Of a DNA stretch of 64,000 nucleotides, positions 28,600 through 61,993 are shown in pieces; positions within the stretch are counted from its first letter, which is position 1, and the number at the start of each line of letters is the position of its first letter. The stretch lies in assembly GCA_965644495.1 (NCBI GenBank), contig CBFFSA010000004.1:248001-312000 (forward strand), read 5' to 3'. The DNA comes from Perkinsela sp. CCAP 1560/9 (taxonomy: Eukaryota; Protista; Euglenozoa: Kinetoplastea). Under the pieces are notes generated by a model. That model ran no database searches and was not told where the DNA came from. It worked only from the letters and a program-made list of their open reading frames with translations. The position numbers and the translations under genes were made by a program.

Positions 28600-30035
28600 G
28601 GCTACAGATGACTTATATTGTAGTCATTTTTCGGAAATTTGCGAAAGTGCATGAAAGGACTATTACTCATTTTTTCGAAATATGAAATGCGGTTTTTCGA
28701 TATGCTAGATGTTATTTCCCTATATTTTCCATTCCTTGTCTCAAAAGAAATACAGATCCTGATACAAATACATATCCTGATTGAAGAAATACACCGATTT
28801 TGATTATAACTGCAATCTTTGTATGAACTTCCAATCTTCATCTTCACTTTCATCAACAAGCGACTCACTAGAGTCTTCTTCTTCTTCTTCTTCTTCTTCC
28901 ATTTTGTCGTGTTCAAACTCGCTTTCCACTTCATCTTCTTCCGACTCGCTTTCACTATCACTTTCTGTCCCCATGTCTCGAGCTACTTTAAACGCACATA
29001 ACAGTACTTGTAACTTCTCTTGCCAAGACGGCTTTTTAAAAAATAAGGTAAACAACGCCACCGTCCGCTTAGACTCTCTCAACGACATCGATAACCTACC
29101 TTGTTTACGTATAGCCCGCGTCACTGCTGAATGACATGACTCCGCGTTGTTGGTCTGAGTTCCATCAGCAGTTACAAACTTAAACTTTCCTTTACTAGAA
29201 TGGTTCACAGTGCGGTGATCGCGAAATGCAATAACGTTCGAGTATCCTTTCCACCCGTCTGTAGTTACTATGGTACGTTGGCTGTCCAATGTGTGCTTCC
29301 TGATCGCCTGCTCCAAGGTTTCCTTATTTCGATTTTTTACGTGTAACCACACCGTGCTTACCGATTTACCGTTCCTTGCAACTTCCGTAAGAGTCAATAC
29401 CCACGTTGGTTTCTTACGAGTTCTTCGTCCGCGGTTGTACTTCCGGCTCCATAAATAAGTCTCGTCAACCTGACAACGCGAGTACTGTATCTTGGAGTTC
29501 CGATACTTCATGTACCGATAAACTGCATCTAAGAGCTCTTTTTTCCACGTAAATGCAGTTTTCCGGTCAACTTCGCATTGCGAAGCAATTGAGCTCATTG
29601 GAACACCTTGACACAGTTTTACCCAAAAAGAGAATTTCTTCTTTCTTTTCTTTTGTTTGCAAGACATGTAGGGATACAGCAGTGATAGACGTTTTCGACA
29701 ACTCCCCTTCTTCCGTCGTTTCCAGCAAATGTTTTCAAAGCGTCTCGCTGCACACCCTGTACCCCCATGCCTGCGACAAGTTTCGGACTTCACAATACCA
29801 TGGCTTATAAGAAATTTCTCGAATTGCTCGAATGGAATTGGGCCATCGTTTTTCCACTTGAGAACACAACGCATATCCGAGCACGAACAGGAGGCCATTT
29901 AGTGGAAAAAAAAGAAATGAAATAAGCCAAATCTTGTTTCACGCATAAATACAATGTATTCTGAGGGAGATGTCATGTTATATATTTGCTTCTCAACGTT
30001 TCCCCAAAATGACTACAATATATCACCCCATTAAC
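28600..30035 (-). mobile_element. Full-length Merlin/IS1595-family transposon
   Basis: Imperfect GG-starting TIRs sharing TATATTGTAGTCATTTT. Perfect 8-bp TSD GCTACTAC (28592-28599 / 30036-30043). Confidence 0.93.
28804..29898 (-). CDS. Merlin (ISXO2-like DDE) transposase, intact
   Basis: QVDETY..RKYNRGR, TDGWKGY, TVNHS, TNNAES. Cys-rich N-terminus and acidic tail. Confidence 0.93.
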   Translation of the reverse strand: MASCSCSDMRCVLKWKNDGPIPFEQFEKFLISHGIVKSETCRRHGGTGCAARRFENICWKRRKKGSCRKRLSLLYPYMSCKQKKRKKKFSFWVKLCQGVPMSSIASQCEVDRKTAFTWKKELLDAVYRYMKYRNSKIQYSRCQVDETYLWSRKYNRGRRTRKKPTWVLTLTEVARNGKSVSTVWLHVKNRNKETLEQAIRKHTLDSQRTIVTTDGWKGYSNVIAFRDHRTVNHSSKGKFKFVTADGTQTNNAESCHSAVTRAIRKQGRLSMSLRESKRTVALFTLFFKKPSWQEKLQVLLCAFKVARDMGTESDSESESEEDEVESEFEHDKMEEEEEEEEDSSESLVDESEDEDWKFIQRLQL

Positions 30036-34883: not shown

Positions 34884-36389
34884 CTAGTAAGGGATTTTTT
34901 TCCCTTCCTTTTGAATACAGAACTCCAACCTTTTCTTGAATGTCACATGTAATTTCTGGCAATAAATCTCGCATGATTCTGACTTTAAATATTCCTCGCA
35001 AACAGCTTTTATTTCCGCTACTGTCGATGGATTTCTCTTATTTTTTCTCCAAAGGTGTTCTATCGGGTTTAGGTCAGGAGAATCTGCTGGCCATTTCGGA
35101 GGTATCTTCTTCTCATCGAACGAAGAGTGGTACTGGCGGAGAGGTGCTTCCGCATTTTCGAATGCCACATGTGTCGTCCACCGCTCCACCGTTCTTTTTG
35201 CGGTATGCGGAGGTGCACCGTCATCAACTAGGATTGCTGTTGAGTGCAAACGCGCATAAGGAGCCCAGTGTGCTTCCAGGACTTGCTTTCTGTAATATAT
35301 GGAACCGAATTGTTTGTTTGGCGGTGGCATTTCACCAATTTCACTAAAGACCGTGCGACGCACATTCTCATCACTGTAGAACCGTCGAAAGTCGTCACAC
35401 CAATGAAAAATTACCCGACCATCACTGTCGATAGCCCCCCATAACATCACCTTTGTCGGATGATGAGAACGGCTTTTCGGAACGCGATCTTCGGGACTTT
35501 GCCAAGCGCCACGAGACAGGTCTCCAGCGTGTACATTAACCTCGTCCGTGAAGACCAGACAACTAAAAAATGATCCATTAGACATGCTGTTCTCTTTAAG
35601 CATGGCATGACAAAATTCTACGCGAGCCTTGCGTTTCGCTTCTGTCAAGTGAAGCGTGTGCTCCTTCGAGCGGAATCGATAACCATGATAATACAGAAGG
35701 GCTCGCATTCGTCGCCTAGAAACATGTAAAGGTACTTCACTCATTTGCATCATTGTGCAACGAAGATTAGTAAGTGTTCTTTGCGAGTTGACAACAGCCA
35801 ATACTTTGGGAAGCAAGTTTTTCGCATTCTCGTAACCAGACCAACTCTGTAAAGTGGTACGTGTGTGTGCAAGTTTCTTTAGTCGCTCGTCACCTTCCGG
35901 ACGTTGCAAAATTCTGCTGCAAGTGCTTCGCGTAAGGAACAGCATGTGACACAAGTCAGCTTGTGTGAACATCCCAGCCTTAAAAAGAAGTTTGACCGTG
36001 ATGACGCCTGTTTCGGTCAAACCACCTTTTCCGAACCAAATGCGCGGTAGGCCTCTTCGATTTCTTTTTCGACGACTCTGCGGACGACCAACTTGTTTTT
36101 TCGGTTCTCCTTTCCATCCCTCACTTTGCTTGAGTAAAAAATTTTCGTCCCTGAGGCGAGCGATAGAAAGTAGCAATGTCGTTTCGCTTTTTTCTAAAAT
36201 TTCGCACTGCGCTTTGTAGTGTTCGCAAAGCTCGGTAGACGTTTTCAACTCTCCTTTCAGAAGAGTTAGTTCAATTGCGAGCTCTCGTTCGCGCTGATTT
36301 GCTTTGCTTACAGACAGGTGCGGTTTATTTCCTACGTTTATTTCACTACGCGCTACGTAGTGGAAAGCGTCACTCAGAGGCTGAGCCAT
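34884..36389 (-). CDS. Atypical Tc1/IS630-like transposase (DD53E) with coiled-coil N-terminal extension
   Basis: VFTDE, VMLWGAI, VDDGAPPH, WPADSPDLNPIEHLW. One candidate end TA|CAGTGCCGTTCC at 34515; the other TIR was not found. Confidence 0.88.
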   Translation of the reverse strand: MAQPLSDAFHYVARSEINVGNKPHLSVSKANQRERELAIELTLLKGELKTSTELCEHYKAQCEILEKSETTLLLSIARLRDENFLLKQSEGWKGEPKKQVGRPQSRRKRNRRGLPRIWFGKGGLTETGVITVKLLFKAGMFTQADLCHMLFLTRSTCSRILQRPEGDERLKKLAHTRTTLQSWSGYENAKNLLPKVLAVVNSQRTLTNLRCTMMQMSEVPLHVSRRRMRALLYYHGYRFRSKEHTLHLTEAKRKARVEFCHAMLKENSMSNGSFFSCLVFTDEVNVHAGDLSRGAWQSPEDRVPKSRSHHPTKVMLWGAIDSDGRVIFHWCDDFRRFYSDENVRRTVFSEIGEMPPPNKQFGSIYYRKQVLEAHWAPYARLHSTAILVDDGAPPHTAKRTVERWTTHVAFENAEAPLRQYHSSFDEKKIPPKWPADSPDLNPIEHLWRKNKRNPSTVAEIKAVCEEYLKSESCEIYCQKLHVTFKKRLEFCIQKEGKKIPY

Positions 36390-53128: not shown

Positions 53129-54300
53129 TATGTGTGGACGAAACGTTCATCCAAAAAAGAAAGTACACCCATGGACAGAAGTGTGCCCCAGGCCTGGCAA
53201 ATGCCATTTTTTTATCCGTTTTTTTCTCATTTTTGCAGCATTCGAGAGATCTCTTTGCCCTAGCGAAGAGCTTTGCCCTTTTTTTCATAGGGACCCCCTG
53301 GTGCTCTGGTGGTGACCCCAAAGTAGACCAAAAACAAAAAATGGTACATTAGACATCTAGAAACAAATCACCCTTTCAATGAGAAAATGAGAAAAAAGGA
53401 AGAAGTATCAATATCCGCAATGCTCCCCATTGGTCTGAATAACTATTTGCATACGTTTGGGAACAGATTTGATGGAATTCAACGCTTTCTGTCTATCATA
53501 CCCCTGCCGGGTAAATGGGTAATTACCCACGTGGTGGTAAACGCGGGTAATTTACCCGGGTCATTGACCCATTTACCCGCTTTCACCCAGATTTACCAAC
53601 CAACCATACGATCCCGTACTAGAATAAAGCTCGATGACTGTGCCAACTTTGCTGAGCAAGTTGTCGCTACAGAAACAGTATCTCAATCCATAGAAGGAAA
53701 AATCCGTCTTTCATTCGGTTTCCCCCCTTTCCTATCCCCTAAACCAAACAATTTTGTTTTTTTTTTTTTTATTTTTTTTTTTGATGACACTTGGAAAGGT
53801 GAATTTTTTTTTTTTTAAGTATGAATCGCGGCATTGCCTCTATATTTTGACCCATTAGACGAACCAAGTAGGTCCATTGGGGGGGGTATATGATTTTAAA
53901 ACAAGCAATCAAATTAGCAATTTCATATTTTGGAGCCCAAAACCAGCAATTCGATCTCCCGTAAGTATAAGAACAATAAAAACAATAACAATAAAAATAA
54001 GCAATCTATGCCCAATCCATTCGCGCGTTCCGGACCGGGTCTTTCGACCTCTCCACGGCCTGACTTGTGAACCCTTCCCTTGTTATACAGGAGGGCGCAG
54101 GCGCGGGCCTGTGTCGACAGCGACACGGTCACGAAACAGGATGCTGGCCGACGGGGAGGAGATTCACTACCCGTGTACTACCTCACTTGGGGTACCTAGC
54201 CCTCGCGGGCTAGGCGTGAGTATAGACTCTGTCGACTCGGCCAGCACCCGTCCTGGATATTATGGCGTCTTCGTGCTGAAACTGGACTGTCAGTAGAGGC

Positions 54301-57300
54301 TTAAGCCTCTACCAAAGGATCCGCTGGGTCCTCTACGCGGATGCGCGAAACCATCATCCTGGCTTGAGAACGCATTAGCGTCACGTTCAGATCCGTTAGG
54401 AGATCGTTTCGCGCTTGGTCTCGTGAAAGGAGCCCTTTGGACGCATTCGCCCGTTGGGTTCCGATGTCCCGGAGTAACGCTAGCGCACTCTCGCTCCAGG
54501 AACCAAAGGATTCCACCACCATCGCTGTGAAGAGATGTCCTGCTTTTTCTGCTTCTTGTCGCTGTCGCGCCTTGGTCTCCGCGAAGTGCTCAGCAAAAGA
54601 CCCCGGGGTCACCCAGCTAGCATTGTGGACTGAGTCCGAATACTTTGTTTGCTGTGCGTGAGTGACCGCAAAATCTAGGACCATGCCTTGCGCTAAAGAT
54701 CCTTTGGCGATGGAGGCCGTTGGCAGAAATACGTCCGCTGGTCTCGTGAGAGCCCCCCCAGGACCCCGATTTCCCAAACTCTTCTCTCTCTGTGGCGCCA
54801 GGAAGGCTCTGCTGCAGAACGATGTAAATTGTTGGGCCAGAGCGTTGTGCCGTGAGATGATACCATGGCCGTTCTTGCGGAGCAAAGCGTGCTCTCCATT
54901 CTTGAGCAAGGGAAGGGTGCACCCGTCAGCTGGGCAAGGCCGATCTTCGGGGAAGACGTCCATGCCTAGCCACCAGCGTGTTAGGGTACGAAACTCCGTG
55001 TGAGTGAAAGCGTAGCCTCTGGTCTTGGAGGGAGTTGCGAAAGCCCAGTTTCCGGCCCCTTTTCCGGACTGCGAGATCCATCGCGCCCGCGTTCTTGCGT
55101 CTGCCTTTGAATATGCCGTTTGAAATTCCCTATCCGAGATAGCTTGGCTGAGATGTTTTTGCCTCGGGATGATCTTTTCCTGATCCGTCGAGACCGGGAG
55201 AAGGGAGTGATTGAGGGATAGTGCGAGTTTTCTTTTCGCTGGGCGGGAAAGGATGCTCCGATTTGCATGATATTCACCAGGCACGCTAGGTTTGGTAATG
55301 CGTCCAGTGTATGGATCAACCAGATCAGTCCCAACTTTGTCATTTATGTCATGTGCTGAGCTGGAAAATCCCTCAGCTTCTGTGGGGTCCCAGTTGTCCA
55401 AGCTAGCGGCGTGCGCGACGGAAGAAACGTAGGCTGCTGACTGGTGGAGAATTGATGAGCGAAGTCCGAACCCGCCGTGGCGTTTTGGTCGTTGTATTTG
55501 GTCGCGAGCGGCGACGCCTAAGGGAGAAATTGCGTGCTCCACGGCCTGGACTAGATGAGAGTCAAGTTTTTGGCATAATTCTCCAAGGGCTTGGGGAGGA
55601 GTGGTGCGCAGTGCGTACACCATCTGACAAAACCCCGAACATTGCCGTATTAGTGCGAGAGCTATTTGGGGATCTTCTAACACAGCAGTAGCTTCTAATG
55701 TTTCGCGGGCTGGTTCAATCGCGTGTGTCATGAGAAACTCCGCACAGTGTTCCGCAGAGCCTATTGGGCTTCCAAGAATGTCGAAGTTCCCGTCGTACCG
55801 TATTTTATCACTGGGGATGTCAGGAAAGAAAACGGATGTATGAGCTGATGCTGGGGGGGTAATGATCTCGCACTTGGAGAGATTCAGGAAGAGTCCCCAC
55901 TTCGGTCCTATCTCGTCGAGGACGTCTAGGGCTTTACGGACTTCTTTGGGATCACCTACAAGCACACCGTCATCTAAATACCATAATTGTGTTCGTAGGT
56001 TAGAATTTGATGCAATTTCTTCTGTTACCTCTGCTAACACCAAAGAGAAGAGGAGTGGGCCCAGAGGGTCTCCTTGTTGCACTCCTTCTGCCGAGGGGAT
56101 AAAATCATCGCCGAATGTGAGACAGCTATGATTGGCATAACACCATTCTACCCATGGGGATAGTTCAGGGAAATGCTTTCGTGTGAGGAAGATGAAGACG
56201 GGTCGGCTCACGTTATTAAAGGCGTTCCGAAGATCCACCTTACAGAACGTTATGTTCTCATTTTCTTCATTATTTCTCATTAGACGGCGACAAAGGTGTA
56301 TCACTCTTTCCGCCCCAGCAGACGCTGCGACTCCGTATTGACGACGTCCAAAGAAGGATCCTGCTTTTTCTTTTATCGAAAGGCATACTGCCTTGCTCAC
56401 CAGGCGTCTAAGGGTTTCCCCCGCAGCGATAGGCCGCACGTCATCTTCCCCTTTTTCGAGTGCGCATAGCCGTGCCCCTGCAAAAAAAGGTTGCACTTCG
56501 TCTGGGGCTTTGCCAGCTAGAAGATGGTTTACGAAGGAAGTGAGCGTCGTAAGAGGATTCATATTCTGGTCGACGTGCTCTTGAAGCGCTGTTTGGAGGT
56601 GTTCAGGCCGGAGCCCCATAGTCCCAGCAGAGGATCCGCGACGGAAGGTATCTACTGCTTTTCTTACCTCGGATTCGTCCAGTTTTAAAGCTTCTTCTTC
56701 CAGGGGAGGTAGGGGGCACGAGATCGGATTACCATGGGGGCTGGGGTGTTTTTCCTGCAGCTTTAGCAGGGTTTCCTCGCTGTATGGTGCAAGTGGAGCT
56801 GCAGTAAGGGCAGCCATGCCTCGGGAAAATTCTCCTTGGCGAACCAGAATTTCAGCCCGTATTGCAGCCTTGTCTTCTTCACCCTCAATCTCATTATTCG
56901 GCACTTTTGAGCGCTTCCTGTCATGCTCCGAATTTGCTTGGGCCCATAGGGTGGTATATTGGCCTTGTATCCAAAGTTCCATTCGCTTTGAGATGTAGGA
57001 GGTATAGGACTTGTGAGCTTTACGGCCTCCTCGGTACGGGGCTGGTAGGACGCATTTCGGAAGCAAGGCAAGAAGGGTCCAGGCTCTCAGTGAGTTTTCG
57101 TTTACCGCGGTGGAGAGGGCTGCGGTAAAAATTCTGGTCCACAGATATCGACATCGGTGTGGGACATCCTTGCACGTGCTTATTTGGGTCGTGCAAACTT
57201 CCTCTAGGGACGGTAGACTATGCGTACCTTGCATATCGTACATGGCTTCTCCGGACTCTGACAGCTGTGAATGCTGCTGTGGTTGTGAGGGCGGCTGCGA

Positions 57301-58101
57301 GGAGGGTGGTGTAGATTGCATTTTACAATGATTCAAATGAGAAGTTTTCTTGCTAATATCGTAATGACGACCGCATGCGTCGCAGAGAAATCGTCCTTCC
57401 TTTGTCCACCAGTCATTGGGTATGTTATTTCCGTGTCGGTAAGCAACGTGGTTGTAGTACGACTGCCATTGACCTCCATGGGCACGAGTTTTCCAAATAC
57501 AGTTTTCTGCGGGGCACTCCCTTTGTGTCGGACGGTTTTGGGAAGATGGAAACGTGAGAACTGGTTCGCTCGTCGAAGGTGGGATTTCAAGGGAAGTTCC
57601 TTGTATTATTTGGCGTGGAGAGTTGTTTTCGGGGTTATGTTCCGTCGCTTCCCCTTTTCGAGGTGTAGCTGGTTCGCGCGCTTTTCGATGAGACTTTACG
57701 ATTCCCCGATTCCCTTTGACGCTTGGGGGTGTGGAAGATGGTTGGCATCGAGTAAACTTTTTAGTGATAGTGTTGCTATCAGATTGCATTTTTTGGTGTC
57801 CATGATGTAATCTGATGACTCGTGAGTGGTTTGTTTCCTCATCGCTACTATCTACCTGTCCCGTATCACGTGTCTGGTTCTCAGTTGAGATCAAGGCGGC
57901 GTTCATGTTCCATTCTTCCGGAATGTTCGCAGGAATAGGGGTCGTGTAGAGCAATTCGTTGTACGTACTCCGTTGCTTAATGAGATGTGCGTTTCCAGCA
58001 AACTGGTCCCAGGATCCTCTATTGTGTACTGCTTCCTTTTGTAAAAATGAATCGTCGTCCATCGGCGGAGGTGAGGCTTTGAGAAGATCGTCCTCAGACA
58101 T
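54301..58101 (-). CDS. CRE-like polyprotein: LsmAD-like motif, zinc fingers, reverse transcriptase, restriction-like endonuclease
   Basis: LRPEHL, RPIAAGETLRRL, DLRNAFN, GVQQGDPLGPLLF, WYLDDG, GLFLNLSKCE. RLE motifs RHN..RPAD..LDFAVT..VVESFG. Confidence 0.95.
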   Translation of the reverse strand: MSEDDLLKASPPPMDDDSFLQKEAVHNRGSWDQFAGNAHLIKQRSTYNELLYTTPIPANIPEEWNMNAALISTENQTRDTGQVDSSDEETNHSRVIRLHHGHQKMQSDSNTITKKFTRCQPSSTPPSVKGNRGIVKSHRKAREPATPRKGEATEHNPENNSPRQIIQGTSLEIPPSTSEPVLTFPSSQNRPTQRECPAENCIWKTRAHGGQWQSYYNHVAYRHGNNIPNDWWTKEGRFLCDACGRHYDISKKTSHLNHCKMQSTPPSSQPPSQPQQHSQLSESGEAMYDMQGTHSLPSLEEVCTTQISTCKDVPHRCRYLWTRIFTAALSTAVNENSLRAWTLLALLPKCVLPAPYRGGRKAHKSYTSYISKRMELWIQGQYTTLWAQANSEHDRKRSKVPNNEIEGEEDKAAIRAEILVRQGEFSRGMAALTAAPLAPYSEETLLKLQEKHPSPHGNPISCPLPPLEEEALKLDESEVRKAVDTFRRGSSAGTMGLRPEHLQTALQEHVDQNMNPLTTLTSFVNHLLAGKAPDEVQPFFAGARLCALEKGEDDVRPIAAGETLRRLVSKAVCLSIKEKAGSFFGRRQYGVAASAGAERVIHLCRRLMRNNEENENITFCKVDLRNAFNNVSRPVFIFLTRKHFPELSPWVEWCYANHSCLTFGDDFIPSAEGVQQGDPLGPLLFSLVLAEVTEEIASNSNLRTQLWYLDDGVLVGDPKEVRKALDVLDEIGPKWGLFLNLSKCEIITPPASAHTSVFFPDIPSDKIRYDGNFDILGSPIGSAEHCAEFLMTHAIEPARETLEATAVLEDPQIALALIRQCSGFCQMVYALRTTPPQALGELCQKLDSHLVQAVEHAISPLGVAARDQIQRPKRHGGFGLRSSILHQSAAYVSSVAHAASLDNWDPTEAEGFSSSAHDINDKVGTDLVDPYTGRITKPSVPGEYHANRSILSRPAKRKLALSLNHSLLPVSTDQEKIIPRQKHLSQAISDREFQTAYSKADARTRARWISQSGKGAGNWAFATPSKTRGYAFTHTEFRTLTRWWLGMDVFPEDRPCPADGCTLPLLKNGEHALLRKNGHGIISRHNALAQQFTSFCSRAFLAPQREKSLGNRGPGGALTRPADVFLPTASIAKGSLAQGMVLDFAVTHAQQTKYSDSVHNASWVTPGSFAEHFAETKARQRQEAEKAGHLFTAMVVESFGSWSESALALLRDIGTQRANASKGLLSRDQARNDLLTDLNVTLMRSQARMMVSRIRVEDPADPLVEA

Positions 58102-58141
58102 GAGAAAGAACCGCGTACCTGGAAAAGATGAAATAAAGAAA

Positions 58142-58177
58142 CAACAAGGTACAGAAACTGTATCTTTATCGTTTTTT
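58142..58177 (-). other. Spliced-leader (mini-exon)-like relic
   Basis: AACGATAAAGATACAGTTTCTGTACCTTGTTG compared with the conserved kinetoplastid SL 3' half (GATACAGTTTCTGTACTWTATTG). Confidence 0.7.
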
Positions 58178-58307
58178 TATTTTTTTTTATTTTTTTCTTG
58201 ACCTGGCGGGCTAATCCCCGCTTCATACAGTACTAATACTATACTGTATAGTAGTCACTGTACTAAAATCAAATACAACTACTGCGTACAATCCACATAA
58301 TGTTAAG

Positions 58308-59797
58308 TCAGTTATGTTCTGTATCTGACAATGATTCAAGCTCACTATCATTTTCCAGCGAATCAGAATCACCTTGAGTCATATATCCTAGCTTGTCGCA
58401 ATTTCCTCGCACGAATATCTGGTGCGATACAACATCGGGAGTAAGGGAGGCCTGGCGTGAGCTATACATATATCCAAGCACGGAAAGCCAGGAGTCGCAC
58501 TTGTTGACCAGGGGTGGCGTCCAAACGTAGTGTACGGCAGCTTCGTAAATCGCTGGGAACATTTCACACCCAGGACCACACCACCATTCGTACTCGTTGC
58601 TGAACTTAGACGGATCCCAACTGAAATCGAGGCATGCTAAGTATTTTTCCCACTCATCGGATGAAATACGAAAGATCGGCTGCTCGGCCGACGGACCGTC
58701 CGCATTTTTGTCAAAAACATTATTTGCTCGAGCTACCGAGATGGGGAGAAGACCACAAGGACGAGCGAACTGAACGATCCATCCGGGACGGAACCAGAGA
58801 ACATCGTTCCAAAAGCGCATATTATGATTTTTTTTGTAGACGAGTCTTGTGATAAAGAAGTGCTTCTCGCATTTTCATTTAAAGAAGTGCTTCTCGGGGA
58901 AATTTGGTCATATATGCGTTTGAGAGCTCCTTCGCAATTGTTACGTGCCACGTGATTCACAGAACTTCCGTCCGCGATCATGAATTTTAGCTTTAAAAGT
59001 CGGTGCTCACCAAGATTCGCCTGAAGAGTAAACACTAGTTGTTCGGCTACTGTTTTTCCATCAAAAGCACGATGACTAGGAGAATAAATGGGAGGTAAGA
59101 CGTATTCTTCAGGGCCTACATATAAGACGGACAATAAAATGTGCTCAGACTTTGCTCGGTCGATTCCTGCATCAACGGCAATTCCGTACACCATGTGTAA
59201 GTCAATGGCAGCGCAAAGCTTCTCCCAGACTTCGTGGGCTAAAATTTCACAGTGTTGATGCCACTTCTTCAAATTTGTTTCCGGAATAGCCTCTTTGATA
59301 ACATTCGGTGGAAGGTCGGGGCGGAGATCCTCATACTTGCGAATCAGCCAAACGAATTTACTCGACGGAAGGTTTGTTAGGGTTTGTAGACATGGGAGCA
59401 CCTTCCCAGCGAATCTTTGAACGGCCGCTCTCTGAATAAACGAAACCTGCGCAGTCGCCAAGCGAGCTCGCTCCACGCCCTCACGACACTTGCGTACATG
59501 CTTATGATAGACGTTTTTAAATCGGCAATGAGATTGAAACGTGCAACCCTCTGTCGTGCACACAAAGTGTACTTTTTGGTTAAGGGGGTCTGTGAGAACA
59601 TCCGCGTGTTCATGCGGACAGTTTGGCGGGCAACGAGCCAAATTAAAGTGCCCAGACAAAGACTTCACCGTCATCTTGTGCCGCTCGTTTCGCTTTGATC
59701 GCTTTGGGTCCGGGGTCACTATCTCATCCTCAGAGCTTGATTCAGATGAAACGATCGGTTCGGGCGTACTGACTGTCGATGATCTTCGTTTGGGCAT
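58308..59797 (-). pseudogene. hAT-like transposase, frameshifted in a homopolymer at ~58830 and probably internally deleted
   Basis: N-terminal Zn finger, IAVDAGID, MIADGSSVN, and C-terminal WW...FPAIYEAA....TP....CDSWLS...R..L (hAT dimerisation-like). Confidence 0.7.
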
Positions 59798-61499
59798 GTA
59801 ATAAATAGAAGATAAAAGTGCAACGCTATCAGCAAAGTAAATGATATTATGATTGAAGGAAAAAGAATCTGAGATTTTTCTGATAGATATACAAAAATAA
59901 AACATTCAAAATCATTTAAGGTACAACTTTTCAGTTCCTGTCATCGAGCGGGTAAACGTGGGTAAAGCGGGTAAATGGGTAATTTACCCGGGTAATTACC
60001 CATTTACCCGGCAGGGGTATGGTCTATGTGGGGCACGTTTTAGATCATTAAACGCCTTTTCTATGGCCTTTATCAGGGTTACAGAGTTGTGTGGCTTAAA
60101 ACTACAAAGTTGTGTGGATTTATGCTGTTTGACTATCTCTGTTCGCTCCGAAATCGACAAAGCGATGTTTCGTTTATGATTAGTACGAGGCGGGGTCCTC
60201 ATGAAGAAAAAACAGGGAGAAAAAAATAATATACTAGAAAAATTGACTGTGTTCCAAAAAAATGGGCAATAAAACCATGTTTTTTGGACCCAGGGGGTAC
60301 CAGGGGGTCCCTATGAAGCAAAGGCGGCAAAGCTCTTCGCTAGGGCAACGAGATCTCTCGAATGCTGCAAAATTGAGAAAAAACGGATAAAAAAATTGAC
60401 ATTTGCCAGGCCGGGGGCACACTTCTGTCCATGGGTGTATAATCGCGGTAAGCCTGCACGAACAGAGTCCTTCTGGGCAGTTTCTGTGACGGGTGTTGAA
60501 AGGGATGGAAAGTGCCAAGAAACAGTGTGGTTCAAAGTGAAGAATCGGAAAACTAACACTTTGTGTAATATTGTGAGGCAATGCACACTAGATTCCAAAC
60601 GAACAGTTGTGTATACCGATTGTCTATCAAGTTAACGCCCATTGTCTGCTACTCGCGATCATTGAAAGGTGAACCACTGATCCAAGATATCGGTTCAAGA
60701 CAAAAGAAGGTGTGCACAATAATAACGCAGAGTCGGCCCATTCTTCTATAAAAAAGATGATAAGACGACAGGGGCGACTGCCCAAAAACGTGATAAGTGC
60801 AAGTAGAGTTCTTTCCGTGTATACTTTATGGTTTAAGAAGACAACCTGGCAAGAACGTTTACAAGCCTTACTGAAAGCGTTCAAGGTTGTACGAAATTTG
60901 CCTCAAGTAGTTGACGTTTTATTCGACTCGTTCGATTCCACCTGCGAGGGAATAAGTGATGAAGAAGATGTTAGCGAAGTCGCATATCCCGAAGATCGGG
61001 ATATGAATGAAACACCATGTGAAGCGGAGTCCGTTGAAATTGACATAAATATGCCAACCGACTAAGACTGGGTGTTTATTGAAAGTTTGATACAGAATTG
61101 ATACATCCTTCAAGGGGATTCATACATTATATTTTGCTTTCACTATATTTACTTTCAATAGAAGTTAACAACCTGCAATATAAATTAACATCCTGTTATA
61201 TAAATTGACATCCTGCAATGTACAGTTAACGGCCTGCAATATAAGTAAGTTGACATCCTGCAATGTAAGTTAACGGCCTGCAATATACAGTAGTTTGAAA
61301 GTAGTTTGAACCCCATTTTTCAACGGGACAAATACTTCGAGAAAATGCTGTGGGAATAAAGACTCACCCAGCTTTTCAAGGATCTGTGCGACACCGCTCT
61401 GAAGCATGAAGAAAGTGAAGTGTCGCGCTTCAATCGTATGGCCGTTGATAAAACTTAGGTTGAGAAACGTAAATATCATCGCGGTAAGCGTGTTCGCAA

Positions 61500-61993
61500 G
61501 GAAGTTCGTTACTGCGACAGAAATCCTACGTGACGGTACATCCGGGAGGACCGTATGGAAGCTCGTCCAGAAGCGTGACCGACCTACTTTGACTGCATTC
61601 GTCGAGAAACATACAGGGAGTAGGTTGGACTGTTGGAAGGGTTATGCCGGTCTCTCTGAAATATGTGAACAACACCATGTAAACCATCAAGTCGAATTCG
61701 TATCGGAGGAGGGGTATCACACTAACAACGGAGAAGGCATGTACAGTATAGTGAAGGACTGGGTTAAGAAGCAGCACCGTAATTTTGGTATTAATTCTAC
61801 GCATTGTCAGGAGCGCGTGGCTCTGCAATGTGTGAAACTGGGTCGAACTCACCGCCACGGTCAAGCTGCTCGAGGAATTCGATTGGCGAATATTATCGCA
61901 TGTGTCGCACAGTACGGCGAAGGGGACCCCCCCAACTTTCGGAGGCTCTGGACCGCATGGGCCCCCGCGCGGACGAGTCGGTCAGTGGGGTAG
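61500..61993 (+). pseudogene. Merlin transposase C-terminal fragment (different subfamily)
   Basis: RDRPTL, DCWKGY, VNHQVEFV..GYHTNNGEG. Confidence 0.8.

Follow-up and report, generated by a model that had tools for sequence, protein, structure and literature searches.

Why should the protein of a retrotransposon begin with a domain that belongs to ataxin-2 and Pbp1? The question is raised by a stretch of 64,000 nucleotides from the kinetoplastid Perkinsela sp. CCAP 1560/9 (GenBank assembly GCA_965644495.1, contig CBFFSA010000004.1, positions 248,001 to 312,000; this whole stretch is hereafter called the window), which holds a retrotransposon without long terminal repeats (non-LTR) on its minus strand. 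The single open reading frame (ORF) of this element encodes zinc fingers, a reverse transcriptase (RT) and a putative restriction-like endonuclease (RLE), and it starts with a segment resembling LsmAD, a domain of ataxin-2 proteins. A sequence-only reading of the window had taken this segment for a host module, involved in messenger ribonucleoprotein (mRNP) interactions, that an element of the CRE type had captured. Our analysis leaves hardly any doubt that the LsmAD is real and maintained by selection on these elements, and makes it probable that it came from the PBP1 lineage of the host itself. Its role can be proposed more tentatively, as that of an adaptor between the element protein and host mRNPs.

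The motifs that had first drawn attention, at 57811-58011 on the minus strand, correspond to residues 31-97 of the 1266-aa ORF, with WDQF at residues 31-34 followed by STYNELLYTT and DEETNHSRVIR as quoted. Pfam, hhalign and pattern scans agree that this N-terminus is an LsmAD in frame with the zinc fingers, the RT and the RLE. The likeness to the host PBP1 and to other cellular LsmADs begins about 13 residues ahead of WDQF, i.e. upstream of the Pfam domain boundary. For the window copy considered by itself, the match is borderline: against Pfam LsmAD (PF06741, gathering threshold 25 bits), it scores 20.7-21.5 bits, its first 120 aa giving an E-value of 5.8e-4 and 20.7 bits. The Pfam check suggested by the sequence-only reading thus gave a mixed answer, a favourable E-value together with a score (20.7 bits) under the cut-off, which other copies of the family exceed.

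Since the window copy alone is borderline, the identity of the domain was settled by matches at the level of the family and by comparison of profiles. A PF06741 search of the whole 21-Mb genome returned 139 matches, of which about 70 exceed the cut-off; almost all are located at the beginning of long open frames of 1,200-1,350 aa. Of 20 diverged element N-termini aligned with each other (A1), 17 match Pfam LsmAD at E<0.01, the best at 2.3e-8, and sister copies reach 34.4 bits. When A1 was compared by hhalign with an alignment of 15 cellular LsmADs (A2), the two profiles matched over 88 columns with a probability of 99.7% and an E-value of 1.9e-26. Furthermore, the A1 profile found 971 proteins at E<=1e-3 among 1.84 billion representative proteins. 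According to Pfam, the matches that were sampled carry SM-ATX and LsmAD (P0042, P0052, P0056) or are other LsmAD proteins; one match, the bacterial Ig-repeat protein P0022, was discarded as a false positive.

The WDQF..N, STY..E..LYTT and DEE..S.V blocks are invariant or nearly so in both the element and the cellular alignments. Most of the positions that do not vary among the elements (W, Q, F, N, Y-T-T, E-E and V) are likewise fixed or almost fixed in cellular LsmADs. An AlphaFold2 model built from A1 shows short helices and reaches a mean confidence (pLDDT) of 67.6; this moderate confidence fits the published flexibility of the isolated LsmAD (PMC11898529). Another candidate for the same part of the protein was rejected: residues 2-34 (58000-58098, minus strand) resemble a blade of tachylectin-2 (PDB 1tl2, 3kif) with a summed E-value of 3e-8, but the best single repeat has an E-value of 2.6, the family profile gives 0.25 and there is no Pfam match. 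This resemblance is probably due to chance.

The fusion is far from unique in the genome. With the first 120 aa as a query, tblastn finds at least 150 matches, at identities from 100% down to 41%, and among the matches listed about 60 lie in open frames of more than 1,100 aa. Nineteen of the 20 full-length copies sampled are RLE elements in which the ORF follows a spliced leader (SL) and 5' untranslated region (UTR) of the element itself and the LsmAD lies 13-92 residues after the start codon; the exception, L062, is discussed below. Between families, the domain core has a mean proportion of nonsynonymous differences (pN) of 0.32 against a mean proportion of synonymous differences (pS) of 0.83, a value at which synonymous sites are saturated. 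Among the 17 pairs short of saturation, the ratio of nonsynonymous to synonymous rates (dN/dS) has a median of 0.12 and is always below 1. Directly after the domain, the linker evolves approximately neutrally (pN 0.68, pS 0.73). Low dN/dS, combined with synonymous saturation between families, indicates that the domain has been kept by selection for a long time. The element superfamily is old and diversified, and its LsmAD is under strong purifying selection. The recurrence of the fusion and a dN/dS below 1, which the sequence-only reading had proposed to look for, are therefore both observed, and they extend over many diverged families rather than a one-off chimera.

In a tree of RT and RLE sequences, the main LsmAD-bearing superfamily forms one clade (support 99), apart from six distant RLE elements. 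These six elements, found by a protein search with the whole ORF (26-32% identity, all with RVT_1), do not carry LsmAD. A second LsmAD-bearing family (L068/L069) shows about 23% RT identity and sits on a very long branch of the same tree. The whole-ORF search also yielded ten close relatives from a single ENA assembly, whose source is the same organism or a very near one. The LsmAD motif is present in seven; the others (P0001, P0006 and P0009) are shorter models that start further along the element protein. A metagenome scan for LsmAD-RT fusions gave 11 loci, none of them with an RT after the match, most contigs being too short to tell.

A full-text literature search found no paper tying LsmAD to a retrotransposon, and a 2026 survey of ataxin-2 'chimerisms' (text and 14 supplementary files) mentions neither reverse transcriptase nor transposons. 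The earlier statement that this domain was not known from CRE, SLACS or CZAR agrees with these searches, in which no described retrotransposon bears an LsmAD and the distant RLE relatives are devoid of it. As far as the literature and sequence searches reach, the fusion of LsmAD with an RLE retrotransposon is new; an RLE non-LTR element linked to the SL in a euglenozoan is of a known kind.

Two other arrangements of the domain were considered and rejected. The first is a 1627-aa frame (L062, 302-5185, plus strand) that seemed to combine LsmAD with APE and RNase H domains. It results from an RLE element into which a long interspersed nuclear element (LINE) of the APE type is nested at codon 256 without a break in the reading frame: up to residue 256, identity to L063 is 98%, after which there is an abrupt change of sequence, and the nested LINE, with its APE, RT and RNase H, starts its own ORF with MADASG. 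The nested LINE itself has no LsmAD. The second is a family of ORFs consisting of LsmAD only, the short LsmAD-bearing proteins being frameshifted or truncated copies. Separately, contigs C30 and C62 (e.g. C62:29098-45362) contain tandem arrays of units about 2.28 kb long, each with an LsmAD-bearing short frame of 170-220 aa.

Host mRNAs are trans-spliced to an SL, and in euglenozoans of this kind gene control is largely post-transcriptional. All of the copies examined (about 40; L001-L040) start with a nearly whole SL joined straight to the 5' UTR. The first 3-6 nucleotides of the SL vary or are partly duplicated between copies; in kinetoplastids, the start region of the SL bears a hypermodified cap. 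In the true SL RNA genes of this genome (L073), which form tandem units of 297 bp, the same 38-nt exon precedes a GT donor and an intron. The junction between SL and 5' UTR in the elements has no AG acceptor, a good polypyrimidine-AG site being located further downstream. At the other end, alternative poly(A) sites terminate different copies of one family. Because of the SL at their start and the poly(A) at alternative ends, the genomic copies look like reverse-transcribed mature mRNAs.

The copies are found on many different contigs, preceded by varied sequences and with an SL on the 5' side only. Very often, a copy directly adjoins the poly(A) tail of a preceding element, resulting in head-to-tail stacks (flanks in L009, L010, L012 and L027). 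Insertion at a fixed site inside SL RNA genes was not seen among the copies examined. Matches to the 3' part of the SL are scattered over the genome (about 500), and L036 contains truncated SL pieces in tandem. It is possible that the SL sequence serves as a landing pad for insertion. Five other loci (L046, L047, L049, L075 and L076) harbor non-coding repeats made of a partial SL, then GTAC and a conserved hairpin-rich stretch, unlike the SL RNA genes of L073; these repeats could be an SL-RNA-derived element resembling short interspersed nuclear elements (SINEs).

What is the source of the domain? Of all matches to PF06741 in the genome, the highest-scoring one (53 bits) lies in a cellular gene on contig 3 (L041), whose product contains SM-ATX, LsmAD and a PAM2 motif. 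Judging from its sequence, this gene is the host orthologue of PBP1/ataxin-2, and its LsmAD bears a striking resemblance to those of the elements; the same protein is found in a near-identical assembly (P0043). In a tree of 146 LsmADs (97 columns, quick search), all 20 element domains group with the host PBP1 and with the proteins P0041 and P0051 in one clade, to the exclusion of about 120 others (support of 97 in the Shimodaira-Hasegawa-like approximate likelihood ratio test, SH-aLRT). P0041 (L078, from a metagenome) and P0051 (L077:8001-9083, from the same or a near-identical organism) are small cellular proteins with a C-terminal LsmAD. P0041 looks intermediate, with an element-like stretch before WDQF and a PBP1-like central part. 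Further small proteins with a C-terminal LsmAD are encoded by L079 and L080.

The tree fits the capture of a host module that the sequence-only reading had put forward, and we consider it probable that the element LsmAD stems from the host PBP1 lineage. Transfer from host to element is the more economical direction since LsmAD was found on no retroelement outside this organism and the near-identical assembly. Neither SM-ATX, nor a PAM2-like motif, nor an MKT1-binding motif was detected by Pfam and motif scan in any of the full-length elements examined. By domain content, LsmAD alone was taken from PBP1, without the Lsm domain or PAM2. Since they lack SM-ATX before the LsmAD and PAM2 after it, the element proteins contain an LsmAD without being members of the ataxin-2 family.

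These elements share with R2-type RLE elements and with CRE, SLACS and CZAR the zinc fingers on the N-terminal side, the RT, and, at the C-terminal end, a restriction-like endonuclease preceded by a CCHC knuckle. Like CRE, SLACS and CZAR, they live in a euglenozoan host and are intimately linked to the SL. They differ from all of these by their N-terminal LsmAD, none being described for those elements in the literature searched. CRE, SLACS and CZAR sit at a fixed position inside the exons of SL RNA genes, whereas the Perkinsela copies are dispersed and stacked head-to-tail, with an SL at the 5' end only and alternative poly(A) sites; that they belong to the CRE clade, as the sequence-only reading had it, is no more than possible. 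With ataxin-2, Pbp1 and kinetoplastid PBP1, the elements have in common the LsmAD motif blocks, the profile-profile match given above and a nearest cellular relative that is the host PBP1. Unlike these proteins, they have no Lsm domain, PAM2 or long disordered regions, and their LsmAD is fused to an RT, has a diverged helix and has gained a TPDTG block.

Other LINEs carry accessory ORF1 modules (L1 ORF1p with an RRM; esterase or PHD types). By analogy, the LsmAD would be a non-catalytic module kept by selection, presumed to serve ribonucleoprotein formation or mRNA handling, in this case of host origin. It differs from ORF1 modules in being part of the same polypeptide as the RT and in belonging to a type of domain that does not itself bind RNA (PMC11898529). 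Moreover, LsmAD occurs outside the ataxin-2 architecture in several lineages. A PDZ domain, two LsmADs and an RRM are combined in P0027, P0035 and P0039, proteins from Diplonema papillatum (P0027), Flectonema neradi and Lacrimia lanifica. P0040 and P0045 resemble these in having two LsmADs, and the fungal protein P0050 combines three LsmADs with a kinase domain. Because of these diplonemid and fungal proteins and of the small proteins with a C-terminal LsmAD, LsmAD can be seen to behave as a portable module, shuffled in several lineages. None of the other shuffles (P0027, P0035, P0039, P0050, P0041, P0051, L079 and L080) is fused to an RT or located in a mobile element.

The features of the window copy are collected in the following table. 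Its 5' limit was set by comparing about 40 copies, whose common sequence starts inside the SL, and its 3' limit by the A-run at 53804-53816 and by the 3' ends visible in the upstream flanks of other copies.

Table. Position of the retrotransposon copy and of its parts in the window
Feature	Position	Strand	Basis or content
Whole retrotransposon copy	53804..58173	(-)	SL relic, 5' UTR, one ORF, structured 3' UTR and A13 tail
SL relic, 32 nt, SL exon positions 7-38	58142..58173	(-)	Exact match to the 3' part of the SL, 0 expected by chance
5' UTR, polypyrimidine tract and AG close before the ATG	58102..58141	(-)	Read directly
Intact single ORF, 1266 aa	54301..58101	(-)	ORF list and Pfam
LsmAD domain, residues 18-97	57811..58050	(-)	Pfam PF06741, hhalign, element alignment, host PBP1 sequence
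Zinc finger 1, C-x4-C ... H-x5-H, residues 196-223	57433..57516	(-)	Pattern scan
Zinc finger 2, C-x2-C ... H-x3-C, residues 240-259	57325..57384	(-)	Pattern scan
Reverse transcriptase, residues 550-763	55813..56454	(-)	Pfam RVT_1, E 1.1e-18
CCHC knuckle and restriction-like endonuclease motifs RHN / RPAD / LDFAV, residues 1056-1148	54658..54936	(-)	Alignment with sister families and distant RLE elements
G+C-rich 3' UTR	53817..54300	(-)	Sequence
A13 tail	53804-53816	(-)	Sequence

Since it combines zinc fingers, RVT_1 and CCHC/RHN/RPAD/LDFAV motifs and has no Exo_endo_phos (APE) match in Pfam, the window ORF is classed by its domain content as that of a single-ORF RLE-type non-LTR retrotransposon, the endonuclease being assigned at the level of motifs only. 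Among solved structures (PDB), its RT is closest to R2 retrotransposon proteins (E 2e-6). As fourth ligand, the knuckle of the window copy has an Arg (residue 1075, nt 54877-54879), in contrast to the Cys of all other copies and proteins showing the knuckle motif. The SL relic has the sequence of the exon of the true SL RNA genes in L073, and the window copy is devoid of 6 nt that its nearest sister copies have directly after the SL. One part of the 3' UTR (53950-54237) is about 100 times more abundant than the body of the element, as measured by depth in DNA contigs, which suggests many 5'-truncated or non-autonomous partners with a common tail.

Upstream of the element, the SL relic adjoins the A-rich tail of a flank (58174-59905, minus strand) that contains two overlapping ORFs (390 and 170 aa) without Pfam matches and may be another retro-copied unit stacked on the element. 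Elsewhere in the window, which is rich in transposons and has only six ORFs of at least 350 aa, other transposons are represented by two IS1595/ISXO2-like DDE transposase ORFs and one ORF of the Tc1/mariner type with DDE_3 (28804-29898 on the minus strand, 61406-61993 on the plus strand and 34884-36389 on the minus strand).

What could an LsmAD do at the head of such a protein? The isolated domain is flexible, poorly folded and does not bind RNA by itself (PMC11898529). In the parent proteins, the Lsm domain binds LSM12 and PAM2 binds PABP, the LsmAD being left without an assigned partner (PMC11166328). In Trypanosoma brucei, tethered PBP1, LSM12 and MKT1 raise the expression of a reporter, and PBP1 with MKT1, LSM12 and XAC1 boosts the expression of bound mRNAs, the entry of XAC1 into the complex being left open (bioRxiv 10.1101/2020.03.02.973057). 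We propose that the element LsmAD could be a protein-protein adaptor that would dock the newly made element protein on the LsmAD partner of PBP1-type mRNP complexes of the host. Complexes of this type make kinetoplastid mRNAs more stable and promote their translation; docking would favour the stability or translation of the element's own capped, polyadenylated mRNA. It could also hold the RT on its own mRNA, a role played by ORF1 proteins in two-ORF LINEs.

This adaptor mechanism is put forward tentatively, as one that has rather less than an even chance of being correct. Its narrower form is slightly more speculative: here, the LsmAD would be an autonomous docking module for a component of the PBP1-type mRNA-activating complex and would replace an ORF1 protein to couple the RT to its own SL-capped, polyadenylated mRNA during or right after translation. 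Taken as a whole, a host-derived and selected LsmAD, carried by mRNA-like elements and acting as an mRNP adaptor, is the best explanation that we can offer, and we rate it a little above an even chance. The sequence-only reading had suggested that the domain recruits or mimics the host mRNA-stability machinery. Such recruitment or mimicry is conjectural, and the elements do not have the Lsm and PAM2 parts that bind LSM12 and PABP (PMC11166328). The predicted structure of a complex between the Lsm domain of the host PBP1 and the element LsmAD scored 0.00, a result that counts neither way.

Several points weigh against this explanation. Regarding the adaptor role, we know of no LsmAD partner in any organism. 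Regarding the domain itself, the window copy scores under the Pfam cut-off, and the elements show little conservation of the central helix that cellular LsmADs possess (AERIAREIE block in A2). The elements have invariants of their own, namely T61, D63 and G65 of the TPDTG block, H10 and P41, W48 being nearly invariant, and the function may thus have shifted. Regarding its origin, the LsmAD tree is based on a short alignment and a quick search, with SH-aLRT as its sole support, and an amino-acid make-up common to one genome could help to draw host and element LsmADs together. The presence of LsmAD in both the main superfamily and L068/L069 may reflect one capture, two captures or a transfer between element lineages, and the RT and LsmAD trees fit each of these. 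Lastly, no RNA run containing the element was found, and the elements are known here from DNA contigs alone.

If the function did shift, the LsmAD would have been turned to an element-specific task unrelated to PBP1, such as multimerisation, import into the nucleus or interaction with the target DNA or the SL, and only its fold or motifs would remain. The unconserved helix, the new invariants (H10, P41, W48, T61, D63 and G65) and the short helices and moderate pLDDT of the AlphaFold2 model all speak for such re-use. However, the invariants of the elements are largely those of cellular LsmADs, as would be the case if the ancestral contact surface were still in use, and we regard re-use as unlikely, though the most serious of the alternatives.

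Somewhat less likely again is that the element LsmAD acts as a decoy, competing with PBP1 for the LsmAD partner and disturbing the mRNP or granule control of the host, for instance to let the element RNA escape sequestration or repression. A lone LsmAD, deprived of the Lsm and PAM2 parts that link PBP1 to LSM12 and PABP, does have the look of a competitor (PMC11166328), and the motif blocks shared with PBP1 are strongly conserved. Yet a free protein would serve a decoy equally well, whereas all full-length copies have the LsmAD in the same polypeptide as the RT, and no intact family of LsmAD-only ORFs was seen. That the N-terminus is a mere passenger or an artefact (a chance likeness, a read-through into a gene fragment or a one-off chimera), as the low Pfam score of the window copy and the nested L062 frame, which did prove to be an artefact, might have led one to fear, is scarcely credible; evidence on selection and on the copies excludes it, namely the presence of the domain in at least 150 copies from many families, the hhalign probability of 99.7%, a domain kept (dN/dS about 0.12) across synonymously saturated families while the adjoining linker drifts, and an LsmAD always located 13-92 residues after the start of the element ORF, behind its own SL and 5' UTR.

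Ataxin-2 is a human disease gene (spinocerebellar ataxia type 2, risk of amyotrophic lateral sclerosis), and LsmAD is conserved in ataxin-2 proteins across eukaryotes. That a selfish element has retained, under strong selection, the LsmAD without the rest of PBP1 argues for a function proper to this domain and offers a simple bait for its partner. If the adaptor explanation is true, the Perkinsela elements would be a natural 'domain dissection' leading to the LsmAD partner and, to our knowledge, the first retrotransposons with a piece of the ataxin-2 of their host. LsmAD represents a new kind of accessory domain for non-LTR retrotransposons, on elements that appear to move as processed mRNAs with an SL and a poly(A) tail.

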